From Guillardia theta CCMP2712 (taxonomy: Eukaryota; Protista; Cryptophyta): a stretch of 64,000 nt of DNA. This document shows, piece after piece, positions 1,514 to 6,199 of this stretch; the stretch's first letter is position 1, and every line of letters starts with the position of its first letter. The position numbers and the translations under genes were made by a program. Below the pieces are notes generated by a model that searched no databases, was not told the DNA's origin, and saw only the letters and a list, made by a program, of their open reading frames with translations. Where the stretch lies: contig NW_005434638.1 in the NCBI RefSeq assembly GCF_000315625.1, positions 123,692-187,691 on the forward strand. Reading direction: 5' to 3'.

Positions 1514-2185
1514 ATGCGCTCCCTCCCCGTTCTGTTTCTCGCGGTCACCGCGGCCTCCGCCTTCGTCCCCCCCCTCAAGAACCCCTTCCCCGCCCTCTTC
1601 GGCATCTCTCCTTGCAACCTCCCATGCATCGCTTCGTCTAGACCGGTATTCCACTCTTGCACGGCCTATCGTGCTTATGCTTGATTTCGCACGTGTACTG
1701 CTCGCCAGGATAATTTGTTCCTGAGGCTATGTTTGTGTGATGTTGTGAATGCTTGCTTGTCTTGCATGCTCTTAGTAAACTTGCTTTGCTTGATTGCTGA
1801 CTTCCAAGCCTTGTAGGTTGCTCGCTTTGCAGGATTGTCGATGCAAGAATTGGATCCCAACAAGTGCTTCGTGAGCGGACTTCCCTGGGCATTGACGTCG
1901 GAGGATCTTCGTGACGTACGATATTTCTTGTTTGCTTATCCTTCAGCTAATTTGTCCTTTCAGCTCTTCGCCGAGTTCGGGGCCATCCAGGATGCGAATG
2001 TTGTTTATGATCGCGAGACTGGACGCAGCAGGGGATTTGGCTTTGTGACCTTCGCTGAATCAGCTGACTGCGAAGCCGCCATCACCGCCATGGATAAGGC
2101 TAACATTGGAGGAAGAACTGTCTTGGTCAAGCAAGCCAACGTGCGCGAAGCTCGTCCCGACAGGAACAGGATGCGATCAGATTAA
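1514..2185 (+). CDS. Plastid-targeted single-RRM RNA-binding protein (spliced)
   Basis: ATG at 1514 begins MRSLPVLFLAVTAASA^FVPP (signal peptide with ASAF motif). Downstream exons give RNP2 CFVSGL and RNP1 RGFGFVTF. In-frame intron ~1916-1963; stop TAA at 2185. Confidence 0.85.
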
Positions 2186-2698
2186 GTCGTTGGTGTGTCT
2201 CGTATAGTTTTCCTTTGTCGAGAGTTTGAGTTGCATGTAGCATAGTGTTTTGCATTTTTTCAATGTTGAATTGCTCGTTTCATGATGGCAAACTCAGCCA
2301 GATTTAAAGCATTCCCAAGTTGTGTGAGAAGTAAACTTGCTCTTTGAGTAACTCCTCTCTTACTTCCAGATCCAACAGTCTGTTAACTTCACTTCGCACA
2401 AACAGAACTTTCCGATCGCCAATGCTGGAATAAGACGATCATTCTTTGGACAATTCAGCTGTAGAATCAATTAGACGAAGATTTGAGAGAACGAGCACAA
2501 GGCAGATGTAGAGGGAAAGGGAGGGGTGACATGAGAGAAGAAAGCAAGAGAAAGCGAAGAAGAGGAGGGAAGGAGGGAGGGAGGGGGGAGAGGAGCTGGA
2601 GGAGGATGAGGTTACCTTCTGTACAAGTCGATCATGTATTGTGAACATCAATCTCCCATTCACTCTGTCATACCACACCTTGTTCGGGCTGGTTAGCT

Positions 2699-5268
2699 TC
2701 AAACTTTGTTTTCCCTCGCAATCAACACCTGAACTCGCACGCCAAGTTCCACCCTCAGTGAATTTCTGCTCAAGTCCAGCATCCAGCTGACTTGTATACC
2801 CGCAGTGACTGAGCCTCTTGTCCCTTGCTGCTCCTCCACCGCTGCTTCCTCCTCCACTTCGTCGCTGCGCGTCACCGCGTCTCCTGCGCTCGCTCCATAG
2901 CTACTCATCCACTCCTGTACTTGACCTGCTTGTACGGCTCCCACGTGCACCTGAAGGTTGTCCTCGACCTGCAGCAGGTGAAACTCCCAGCCGTACGCGC
3001 TGATACCATCGATGTGGACGCTGGAGATGTAGACGAAATCTTCACTGGCGCTGAAGGTGAAGGACTCCGTGTAGTGTCTCTTGCACACCATGGCCCCTAC
3101 CTCCTTGATGTACAGCTCTGTGCTCGTTCTCTCCTGGGAGAAGCATATGGGGGGGCCGAACAAGACCCGGAAGGAGCTCTCCAGCTGGACCATCAGGGGC
3201 TTCTGCACGTAGAAGGACTCGTACGCTGCTATCCCGATCTCGCAGTCCGCCGTCCCTGTCCCTAGCCGCTCGATGAAGAGACTCCGAAGCTCCTTGCAAG
3301 AGAGTTTGAAAGTCTCATCGAGGTATACCCCTCCCCTGCCCCTCTTGAGGTTGGCTACGAGGCGTTGTTGGAAGATTGACCCCGAGTTGGTTATCCAGTG
3401 GTTCCTTCCCCTCGTTATGCTCGTGACCAATGTGACCTCGGGAGCTACCGACAGTGAATCTTCATGATACTCCTGCTTGCAAGCGGAAGAGGAGAGAAAC
3501 ACCCTATCCTGCCCTGCCGTGTGCTCCGGACTGCTCAGGTTGAGCATGATGATCTTGGGTCTGTCCGGTATCGCCCGACAGAGCAGCTCTATTATCTCCT
3601 TGATGTACACAAACTGCTGGAAATCTTCGACAACGGAGCGACGAGGGTCGGGCGAGCACCAGAAGCCTCCGGGAGACCCGAGGGACTGAACGTAGAGGAG
3701 GAAGCAGTCCGAGTCGTCGAGGTTGCCGTCGGGTCGCAGCGCCGTCGAGAGCTCCTGCAGCAGCGACATGCTGCTTGCTCGAGTCAAGTTTGACTTGAGG
3801 TCAACCTTGGGGAAGCCGAGCTGGGGAAGGGATCTGACGAGGACGTCGCAGTCAGCCCGAGCATTCTTGGCGTTGTCCGGGTTGGAAGCCTGGATGACTT
3901 GTTCGTAGAGGAGGAGGAGCGCAAACCCGTTGGTCACTCTCCTGCATGCTCTCTCCTGCCGCTGCTCCTTCTGCTCCAGCAGCTCACTGGCGCTGGTCAG
4001 ATCCTCGTCCCTCGTGTGAGTGACTCTGATCTCGGCGAGGCTGGGCCAAGGGGAGGAGCCTGTCCTGTCATCGTGCAGGCGCTGCAGAAGATCCTCTACA
4101 GGATCTTTGTCGGGGAGAGGGTATTGAGTTCCATCGTCTGTTTCCGACATCATCTCCTCAAGAGCATCTGCCGTCGTCATAAAACCATCGCCAATGCTCC
4201 TGGAAGTGTTCCTTCCTGTAGTGAGAAGTTCTCCGTTCCTTCCTGTAGTGAGAAGTTCTCGTGCGTCCACCTCAGACATACCCGACGGCGGCTGCTCGGG
4301 AGGTACGGCATGTGCGACTGCGCTGTCGTGTCGTTGGCCTTCACTCGCCGTCTGCTGCTCGGCGTGCTCCTCTCTTCTCATTCTCTTCTCCAGCATGTCT
4401 TGTATCAGCTCGTCCAGCTGGCTGATCTGCTACGTGATCCTCGTCACGGACTGACATGACAAAAGTCTTCAGAACCTGAGCCGGTGAAAATTTGTCATCG
4501 TCCGAAAGGTCATCAACCAACCAACTGAAGCGAGCATGTCACAACAGGAAGCTCAACAGTCAGCGGGAAGTAACGTTCTCAGCTCTTACATGTCATGCTG
4601 GTGTGAGGGTGTGTCGGTGAGGGTCTTAGATGCCCCTCCTCTACTTCATTGTCATTGTAAGATCCTCGAACAATCGCTTCTGCCTCACATTCCCAGCTGC
4701 TCGATGTTAAGGCCTGCTTCCATGGCAGCCAGCAGCCCCTGAGGGAACAGTCAACAACGACCGCAGCTGCATGCTCGGGACCTCCGTCTCCTCGGTGACG
4801 TCGGAGGACACGCTTCGTAGGGTTTGCTGCAGTAGGGTGAGAACAGGGAGGGGAGGGGAGAGAGGGGAGTGGGGAGGACCATGGCGTCTTGTTCGTGCTT
4901 GAAACCAAGAGACTCTGCAGACTCCCAGAGGTGTTGTGCAAGAGAATAATGTCCGTTGAGAAAGAGCTTGTCAAAGATGTTCTTTCCCTCCTTGTCCTGC
5001 CTCAACCATCATCAAGGAAACCAAACAAGTGCAAGTACAAGCCAGCAGTGATCACCTTGCTGTTGACATCAGCTCCGTGGTTGAGGAGTGCGAGCACAAC
5101 TTCCTTGTTTCCTCGCATGGCGGCGATGAGCAGCAAGGAGTTTCCGTCGTCATCTTTGCTCTCAAGGTCCGCCTTGGCGCTGAGGAGCAGGTCGAAAACG
5201 TCGCACCTCCTCTCCATGACAGCGAGAGCAAGCAGAGAGTTCACACCGCTCTGATCCTTGGAGGACAT
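2699..5268 (-). CDS. Ankyrin-repeat protein joined to a catalytically dead caspase-like (peptidase C14 fold) domain and a beta-rich C-terminal domain
   Basis: 5002-5268 encodes ankyrin repeats (DDDGNSLLLIAAMRGNKEVVLALLNHGADVNSK, continued after a GT-AG intron by DKEGKNIF). The 565-aa ORF 2699-4396 has caspase motifs in order: GFALLL, D..L...L..LGF, NLT, DCFLLYVQSLG, PKIIMLNLS, TLVTSITRG..W...GSIF. The join through small exons at 4430-4830 is inferred. Confidence 0.7.
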
Positions 5269-5351
5269 GCTGATCCTTCTCCTTCCTTCACTTGCTCCTC
5301 CCCTCCACCTTACCTGCTCCTCCTCCTCTCTCCCTTGTTTCCTCTACTTCC

Positions 5352-5383
<32 letters not shown>

Positions 5384-6199
5384 CTCCTCTTCCCCTTACA
5401 ATCCCCCCCGCCCCCCACCTTCGCCTCCTTCCCTTGCTGTTGCAATGCTCCGCCTCCCGCAAACCTGGTAGGAACGGACGGGGATGGGAAATACCCTGGA
5501 CGACCAGCAGGACTAGCAAGAATGGAGGGCAGGGGGGGAGAGGGAGCGGGGGGGGGGGGGGGGGGCAGAGGGAAATTGGGAGATCAGAAAGGAGGAAGAG
5601 GAAGGGAAGAGGAGGAAGAGGAAGTGAGGGAGGAGGGCAGAGTTGAAGATGAGCAAGAGCCTGACGTCGATGGTGTGGACAAGAAAGGGAACAAAGAGAC
5701 CCCTGTGTTCATTAAAGCTGTAAAGTTTCATTCATTGCTTCTCTACCATCATGTGCTTTGATATTATCTCGCCATACGGGCCATAAGTCGCCTCCTGCTC
5801 CTTCTCCCCCCCCTCCCCCTGCCGTCACAAGCATGAGGAGGAAGCAGCACAAACCAACGCAGAACCTCTTGCGGTCGATGCAGAGACTTGGAGAGTTTGG
5901 AGATGATATTGTTGAACTTGATGACCTTCTGCTTCCTATCTTAGACCCCTCCCTCTCCCCCTCCCCCTCCCCCTCCCTCTCCCCCTCCCTCTCCCCCTCC
6001 TCCTCCCCGTCCTTCTCCTCTTGCTCTCCCACTTGCTGAATCTCCTCTTCGTCTTGCCCCTCCTGCTTCTGCCAATCTTGCTGCTCCTGCTCCTGCTCCT
6101 GGCCCTCCCCCTGCTCCCTCCTGCCCCTTCCCATGTAGCTACTCTGCCGTGCCTCAACCCTCTTGCTCTCCCTCCCTCTGCTCCGCACTGCCATTGCTC

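Follow-up and report, generated by a model that had tools for sequence, protein, structure and literature searches.

A predicted caspase-fold pseudo-protease between ankyrin repeats and a probable SPRY-like domain in the cryptophyte alga Guillardia theta

Caspases are said to occur in animals only, and algae to have only metacaspases (PMC5756287, PMC12462507), and a locus in the cryptophyte alga Guillardia theta CCMP2712 therefore raises the question of what a caspase-like protein with replaced catalytic residues is, and might do, in such an organism. The locus lies in a 64,000-nucleotide (nt) stretch of contig NW_005434638.1 (positions 123,692 to 187,691 of the forward strand; hereafter the window, in whose positions coordinates are given), in which an open reading frame (ORF) of 565 amino acids (aa) is present at 2699-4396 on the minus strand. 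An earlier note, made from the sequence alone, had read this ORF as part of an ankyrin-linked pseudo-caspase, and its remark that algae are usually described as having metacaspases agrees with the literature just cited. We propose, with a probability of roughly 0.7, that the gene encodes a cytosolic multi-domain adaptor composed of ankyrin repeats, an acidic linker, a C14 domain unable to act as a canonical cysteine protease, and a SPRY-like end.

The ORF is long and intact, as the earlier note had it, and is part of a larger gene. The database model P0001 (794 aa, JGI), which was used as the spliced product with its exons checked singly, is 99% identical to the ORF along the full ORF length and adds ankyrin-bearing N-terminal exons and two C-terminal exons. 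Translating the exons one by one regenerated P0001 exactly (2385 nt in sum). Position 2699, previously taken as the end of the gene, is not its end, as the ORF reads through into intron 7 and two further exons follow. Logan contigs X1 (3066 nt) and X3 (2838 nt), which come from two studies, map on 2100-5337 minus eight segments, and all eight of the removed segments read CT..AC on the plus and hence GT..AG on the minus strand (intron coordinates are given after ambiguity shifts from read mapping; for intron 7 the raw skip of 2675-2724 was shifted by +4). Transcript contigs extend upstream to at least 5337. Because the ankyrin exons are joined to the large ORF in the spliced contigs X1 and X3, the proposed fusion of ankyrin and caspase-like parts is real at the RNA level. 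Pfam recognises the ankyrin repeats of P0001 above cut-off (Ank_2, E 6.8e-10, 39.8 bits; Ank_4, E 7.9e-11, 42.4 bits; Ank, 36.5 bits), and the upstream ankyrin exon at 5002-5268 matches Ank_4 with an E value of 8.5e-11. At intron 6 there are alternative 3' acceptors of the NAGNAG type, 3 nt apart (4426-4430), with X1 at 4426 and X3 at 4429; the choice gains or loses one codon just before a conserved ISQLDELIQ motif.

A pseudogene, or a gene model that wrongly fuses separate genes, might be suspected from the few reads on the gene in the raw RNA run X21 and from the lack of a Pfam C14 match in the G. theta protein. The transcript contigs, together with an exon-by-exon translation equal to P0001, rule this out. 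The reading frame is intact across 794 codons, eight canonical introns are spliced out in contigs of two studies, the 'dead' domain is the most strongly conserved in the orthologue, and the layout with ankyrin upstream recurs in three other lineages, leaving this explanation with a negligible probability.

Motifs of the p20 and p10 parts of caspases occur in the correct order over ORF residues 152-405 (P0001 residues 337-590), as had been noticed from the sequence. Taken singly, the G. theta sequence gave little: a Pfam scan of the 565-aa ORF found no family at E <= 10, and a single-sequence phmmer search against the PDB returned LIM-domain noise only (E about 1). An exhaustive HMMER search of 1.84 billion cluster representatives (E <= 0.001) matched nine proteins, namely the Hanusia orthologue, the relatives P0003, P0004 and P0005 (600-650 aa), three fragments, and two proteins outside the family, one of which is an unrelated 4047-aa low-complexity protein and the other an Aedes tandem caspase. 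The Hanusia orthologue matches PF00656 with 34 bits (E 3.2e-8), above the gathering cut-off of 21.4 bits, which P0003, P0004 and P0005 also exceed with 31.3, 45.4 and 22.2 bits, respectively. A two-sequence profile already matched DrICE (3sir) at E 0.004, and a seven-row family profile searched against the PDB matched caspase-1 at E 2e-11, the best 60 sequences all being caspases. In the alignments the caspase motifs K-x-(N/D)-L-T-R after strand 2, S-x-G, and P-K before the hydrophobic strand 4 are present, and G-S-x-F in the p10 part and the terminal strand are also kept.

An AlphaFold2 model of residues 332-592, made from the seven-row alignment, has a predicted local distance difference test score (pLDDT) of 73 and a predicted template modelling score (pTM) of 0.77, and, with six main strands, arranges strands and helices in the same sequence as a caspase protomer. 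Foldseek against the PDB returned at least 393 matches at E <= 0.001, with caspase-11, -4, -6 and -1, CED-3 and caspase-8 in the lead (E about 1e-9 for caspase-11, -4, -6 and CED-3). The VIA structural search, which is independent of Foldseek, gave Z scores of 18.1 for Sf-caspase-1, 17.8 for c-FLIP(L), 17.7 for CED-3 and 17.3 for both Dronc and caspase-4, followed by caspases -9, -8 and -3 (16.9-16.3); lower scores were obtained with metacaspase-4 (14.9), MALT1 (14.7), a SAVED-CHAT protease (13.3) and Yca1 (12.9), metacaspases overall lying at 10.8-14.9. The ESM Atlas neighbours of the domain are likewise mostly animal caspases. We assign this region as a caspase-fold (C14) domain, on sequence profiles and a predicted structure, because of the PF00656 matches in Hanusia and the relatives, the family profile, the matches of the AlphaFold model, and a reciprocal caspase probe (below), and the caspase fold claimed in the earlier note is upheld to that extent.

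Whether the domain is nearer to caspases or to metacaspases was addressed in the whole G. theta genome (87.1 Mb, 669 contigs), which yields at least 28 PF00656 matches of metacaspase type, the pseudo-caspase gene not being one of them. The family hidden Markov model (HMM) matches the Aedes caspase at E 2.4e-20 versus E 0.007 for the best G. theta C14 ORF, so there is no significant direct similarity to the alga's own C14 ORFs. Used as a reciprocal probe against the whole genome, the Aedes caspase domain found exactly one place at E <= 1, and this is the pseudo-caspase gene. By both sequence profile and structure the closest relatives belong to C14A, and no locus in the G. theta genome other than this gene resembles caspases proper. 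When the same genome was searched for paralogues with the protein and with the family profile, each search returned only the gene itself; the search for paralogues retaining His and Cys, which the earlier note had called for, thus yielded no second copy there.

These comparisons bear on the possibility that the protein is a degenerate metacaspase- or orthocaspase-like (C14B) pseudo-protease, and that divergence and database bias create a spurious likeness to animal caspases. Caspases abound in the PDB, metacaspase-4 and MALT1 still reach Z scores of about 15, the genome holds at least 28 metacaspase-type C14 matches, and cyanobacterial pseudo-orthocaspases with replaced dyads are known (PMC6426788, PMC5756287), all of which could be accommodated by such an origin. 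We nevertheless regard it as unlikely, given the difference between the two HMM E values, the finding that the first C14-bearing match outside the family among the 1.84 billion representatives is an insect caspase, the return of this gene alone by the reciprocal probe, the presence of a p10-like part with G-S-x-F where metacaspase-like and orthocaspase proteins have no p10, and the six main strands of the model. A recent transfer from animals was also considered and is unlikely, as identity to caspases is only 12-20% and the introns are of the short, cryptophyte type.

Several C14 proteins of G. theta have been described previously: GtMC1 is of type I, GtMC2 is of type III, and GtMC3-14 are metacaspase-like and p10-less (PMC3734836, PMC5756287, PMC9104976). 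The pseudo-caspase is probably not among GtMC3-14, because those proteins are described as p10-less and metacaspase-like and because the present protein escapes Pfam. GtMC13, the only G. theta C14 protein without a dyad that is mentioned in PMC5756287, could not be mapped to this locus. On contig C97 (154810-232340; loci L014, L016-L018 and L021) at least eight PF00656 ORFs, each of 624-626 aa, lie in tandem; they match only the p20 part of the profile (positions 5-146) and are probably the GtMC genes of the expanded, p10-less 'metacaspase-like' group.

Profile alignments to DrICE (3sir) and caspase-1 set SLG opposite SHG and PKIIMLNLSS opposite PK(L/V)xxIQAC, bearing out the previously claimed replacement of His by Leu and of Cys by Ser (codons in Table 1), and contigs of three runs show no variant letters at either codon. 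QACRG is replaced by NLSSP in G. theta. In the alignments the position of caspase Arg179 is occupied by Ala or Asn, that of Arg341 is a gap or Ile, and Gln283 is Asn; both of the arginines that bind the P1 Asp are absent. In the His column the seven lineages carry L, V, T, S, S, T and T, without a single His, and the Cys column has Ser in G. theta and Cys in all six of the others. As read from these alignments, this pattern makes the loss of His and of the Asp pocket ancestral to the family and the loss of Cys specific to G. theta, a distinction between an old, family-wide change and one confined to G. theta that goes beyond the earlier note. At the Cys site the relatives have in common a C-(G/C)-D-P-x-E-R motif, which is lost in Guillardia and Hanusia.

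It is conceivable that these proteins are still enzymes with a non-canonical chemistry: in the relatives the retained Cys would work with a different general base, such as the conserved Asp/Glu in their C-x-D-P-x-E-R motif, and in G. theta Ser473 would take its place. Persistence of Cys in six of seven lineages despite the absence of His in all of them would fit such an activity, as would the motif that the relatives share at the site. However, the dyad position is without His throughout the family, the seven invariant columns show no other His or base, the equivalents of the Arg179 and Arg341 pocket are absent, and in G. theta and Hanusia D-P-x-E-R is gone, with Ser in G. theta; retained catalysis of this kind is, in our judgement, very unlikely.

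Constraint on the domain was gauged by regional protein identity between G. theta and the closest named orthologue, from Hanusia phi (P0002, EukProt model). The C14-like domain shares 65% identity and the ordered C-terminal parts 61-71%, compared with 39% for the pre-C14 segment, 30% for the linker and 24% for the acidic insert. The C14-like domain is the best-conserved large region, with only a short C-terminal block being higher, and that a dead domain should hold this position argues, at the level of sequence, for a retained non-catalytic function. Where G. theta has introns 6 and 7, the P0002 model itself apparently retains two short introns in frame, and its N-terminus is without ankyrin repeats and looks mis-framed, so that it is uninformative on an ankyrin fusion in Hanusia.

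The environmental relatives carry an ankyrin ORF directly upstream of the C14-like ORF or exons and on the same strand (L022/L023, L025 and L026), and in L025 a possible 123-nt GT..AG interval would join the two parts in frame, just before the conserved L-D-L-L-L-E-E-A-D-R-A-M motif. From this recurrence the order ankyrin, C14-like, SPRY-like appears to be the fixed architecture of the family. The contig of L022, which carries one of the relatives, also has a mitochondrial-carrier gene whose closest named counterparts are in Guillardia theta (49%) and Baffinella frigidus (41%). Since both are cryptophytes, the environmental family members are most likely uncultured cryptophytes, and the family, which is very small (about nine of the 1.84 billion cluster representatives), is apparently all cryptophyte.

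On either side of the C14 domain lie the linker and the C-terminal domain. No Pfam family was found in the linker, which contains a conserved helix motif, ISQLDELIQDMLE, corresponding to LDLLLEEADRAM in the relatives. The beta-rich C-terminal domain that the earlier note pointed out is present and is now considered probably SPRY-like, because five weak lines of evidence agree. Pfam SPRY (PF00622) matches at the same place in P0004, P0005 and P0003 (E 2e-4, 4e-4 and 0.035, respectively), all under the 26.3-bit cut-off. Aligned by hhalign against four G. theta SPRY domains, the C-terminal domain gives a probability of 68.8% (P 4.5e-5) over a match that spans the G-D-v-I-G-c-x-l-D...F-T-x-N-G core, with 30 column-shuffled controls reaching at most 0.4% (P >= 0.13), and a permissive hhalign alignment also matches G-W-E-F-H-L to the W-x-Y-E-V block of SPRY. 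In the ESM Atlas the C-terminal domain neighbours SPRY and Neuralized clusters (0.85; 175 features in common), and a PDB profile search with the C-terminal alignment gave matches at E ~1 only, among them the SPRY-bearing Vid30, ryanodine-receptor SPRY regions and one that is not SPRY, SHPRH. The AlphaFold2 model of this domain is unusable (pLDDT 38). No DED, CARD or PYD death-fold domain was detected by Pfam.

Table 1. Features of the pseudo-caspase gene in the window, and of its environmental relatives on their own loci
Feature	Position	Strand	Details
Coding region	2360-5268	-	9 exons, 794 codons plus stop at 2360-2362
Ankyrin repeats	4922-5232	-	P0001 residues 13-96, exons 1-2, split by intron 4997-5055
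Acidic linker	3944-4826	-	Residues 111-336, exons 3-7, poorly conserved; includes pre-C14 segment
C14 pseudo-protease domain (predicted)	3182-3943	-	P0001 residues 337-590; p20-like and p10-like parts, single exon
Catalytic His site	3680-3682	-	Codon CTC, Leu424
Catalytic Cys site	3533-3535	-	Codon AGC, Ser473 (QAC reads NLS)
C-terminal beta-rich domain	2363-3181	-	Residues 591-794; acidic insert; split by introns 2679-2728 and 2459-2615
Intron 1	4997-5055	-	59 nt, within ankyrin region; splice dinucleotides checked
Intron 2	4827-4879	-	Transcript contigs; splice dinucleotides checked
Intron 3	4739-4781	-	Transcript contigs; splice dinucleotides checked
Intron 4	4641-4688	-	Transcript contigs; splice dinucleotides checked
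Intron 5	4525-4589	-	Transcript contigs; splice dinucleotides checked
Intron 6	4427-4475	-	49 nt, GT..AG, adjoins large exon on upstream side; 4430-4475 in X3
Intron 7	2679-2728	-	50 nt; splice donor at 2725-2729; entered by the 565-aa ORF
Intron 8	2459-2615	-	157 nt; transcript contigs
Last two exons	2678-2616 and 2458-2363	-	Complete the C-terminal domain
Environmental ankyrin, C14-like and SPRY-like relatives	L022:6595-12640, L025:59-3112, L026:3158-6228	+	Full architecture, C-(G/C)-D-P-x-E-R kept

A convergent neighbour at 1835-2351 on the plus strand encodes an RRM_1 RNA-binding protein (Pfam E 6.8e-19) and is very highly expressed in X21 (depth about 170-186), and the neighbour's poly(A) loose ends (2348-2351) come within about 9 nt of the pseudo-caspase stop codon. 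Since transcript contigs merge the two genes, their 3' untranslated regions must overlap in antisense. At window position 3149 one base is missing from a single low-depth, unspliced X14 contig (probably DNA) and is present in high-depth transcript contigs; this is most likely an assembly error in X14. Directly upstream of the 5' end of the gene, 5338-5700 is a Pro/Ser/Gly-rich low-complexity stretch that was masked as a repeat in read mapping.

Beyond the architecture, splicing, fold, residue replacements, conservation, expression and family distribution documented here, the role of the protein is approached by analogy. Because two protein-binding modules flank a conserved, catalytically disabled caspase domain, it is most likely a non-catalytic interaction scaffold, adaptor or regulator. 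His would have been lost in the common ancestor of the family, and the Guillardia lineage would later have lost Cys too. The dead caspase domain could then offer a dimerisation or client-docking surface, as in c-FLIP or in the scaffold role of MALT1, with the ankyrin and SPRY-like modules recruiting other proteins, and the protein might build a signalling complex or hold one in check, possibly during stress or death signalling. Its connection with cell death is circumstantial: a 2025 study reports that G. theta forms apoptotic bodies and that two of its metacaspases are induced in the death phase (PMC12462507). A metacaspase might conceivably be a partner of the pseudo-caspase.

A more specific proposal is a strict c-FLIP-like decoy, in which the protein would form a heterodimer with an active protease encoded elsewhere and so control apoptosis-like death. 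The apoptotic bodies and induced metacaspases would suit it, and the protease-like domain of c-FLIP ties with the top structural matches (Z 17.8). We consider this decoy quite unlikely, since the genome has no caspase-type paralogue with which the protein could pair, metacaspases are described as working without caspase-style dimerisation (PMC3734836), and no death-fold domain was detected. The suggestion in the earlier note of an active partner encoded elsewhere is, in its c-FLIP sense, correspondingly weakened, as the genome has no second member of the caspase-type clade, only metacaspase-type C14 genes. Doubtful, too, is the wider proposition that the ankyrin-pseudocaspase-SPRY family is a vertically inherited C14A offshoot in Cryptista which, by analogy with c-FLIP, acts as a non-catalytic regulator tuning apoptosis-like death in G. 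theta; if it were true, caspase-type proteins would be older than animals.

Several points weigh against the non-catalytic adaptor that we favour, and against the assignments on which it builds. The G. theta protein has no Pfam C14 match, even at E <= 10. The structure model is of moderate confidence (pLDDT 73), AlphaFold may be biased toward caspase structures, which are well populated, caspases lead metacaspases or MALT1 by only 1.4 to 5 Z units, and 'caspase-type' denotes nearest similarity by profile and modelled structure rather than proven monophyly. The SPRY-like nature of the C-terminal domain is probable on sub-threshold and profile-profile matches, and the scaffold or regulator role is an analogy with c-FLIP and MALT1. 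The Cys retained in six lineages hints that the relatives may have some chemistry. Finally, there are almost no reads on the gene in X21, and its expression under the conditions of that run was probably low.

Full-text literature searches turned up no report of a cryptophyte protein that combines ankyrin, caspase and SPRY parts. What is new is a caspase-type pseudo-caspase in an alga, its domain architecture, and the loss of His throughout the family; pseudo-caspases as such are already known, among orthocaspases (PMC6426788) and as human FLIP(L) (PMC7586951). Standard domain annotation misses this one, because the source leaves the protein unnamed and the Pfam domains precomputed there for P0001 are ankyrin only. 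The protein is a concrete candidate for cell-death research in an alga with inducible apoptosis-like death, and would illustrate how a protease fold can be kept in nature solely or chiefly as an interaction module. With the Reticulomyxa proteins discussed below, it also provides a second non-animal data point on when the caspase branch of C14 arose.

Among known systems, the animal caspases (C14A: caspase-1, -3, -4, -6, -8 and -9, CED-3, Dronc and DrICE) are the best profile and structural matches. The G. theta protein has in common with them a p20 part followed by a p10 part on one chain, a predicted six-stranded core, and the motifs K-N-D-L-T-R, S-x-G, a P-K-hydrophobic strand and G-S-x-F. 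Unlike them it lacks His, Cys, QACxG and the Arg179/Arg341 pocket, and identity is 12-20%; at the N-terminus the cryptophyte protein has ankyrin repeats in place of the CARD, DED or PYD prodomain of animal caspases, and a probable SPRY-like domain is appended. The protein resembles c-FLIP(L) (PDB 3h13; PMC7586951) in having a caspase fold with both dyad residues replaced, kept under selection and fused to interaction modules. c-FLIP, however, arose recently as a paralogue of caspase-8/-10, has tandem DEDs and pairs with caspase-8, whereas the cryptophyte gene has no caspase-type paralogue in its genome and no DED, and its pseudo state is family-wide. The MALT1 paracaspase likewise carries a caspase fold between interaction domains and has a non-apoptotic scaffold role (Z 14.7), but its His and Cys are retained, it is specific for Arg and contains death and Ig domains, and it is less similar than caspases in both sequence and structure.

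Cyanobacterial pseudo-orthocaspases and GtMC3-14 (PMC6426788, PMC5756287) are also C14 homologues from photosynthetic organisms, and in some of them the dyad is replaced (Tyr/Ser); these are p10-less and of metacaspase type, whereas the cryptophyte family has a p10-like part. Reticulomyxa's caspase-like proteins (Klim et al. 2018, PMC5982838), which are set beside the present family by description only, are the published precedent for C14 proteins of caspase rather than metacaspase type in a non-animal protist. Reticulomyxa belongs to Rhizaria, another supergroup, and its proteins are reported as close homologues of animal caspases, from which Klim et al. (PMC5982838) argued that the caspase branch is older than animals.

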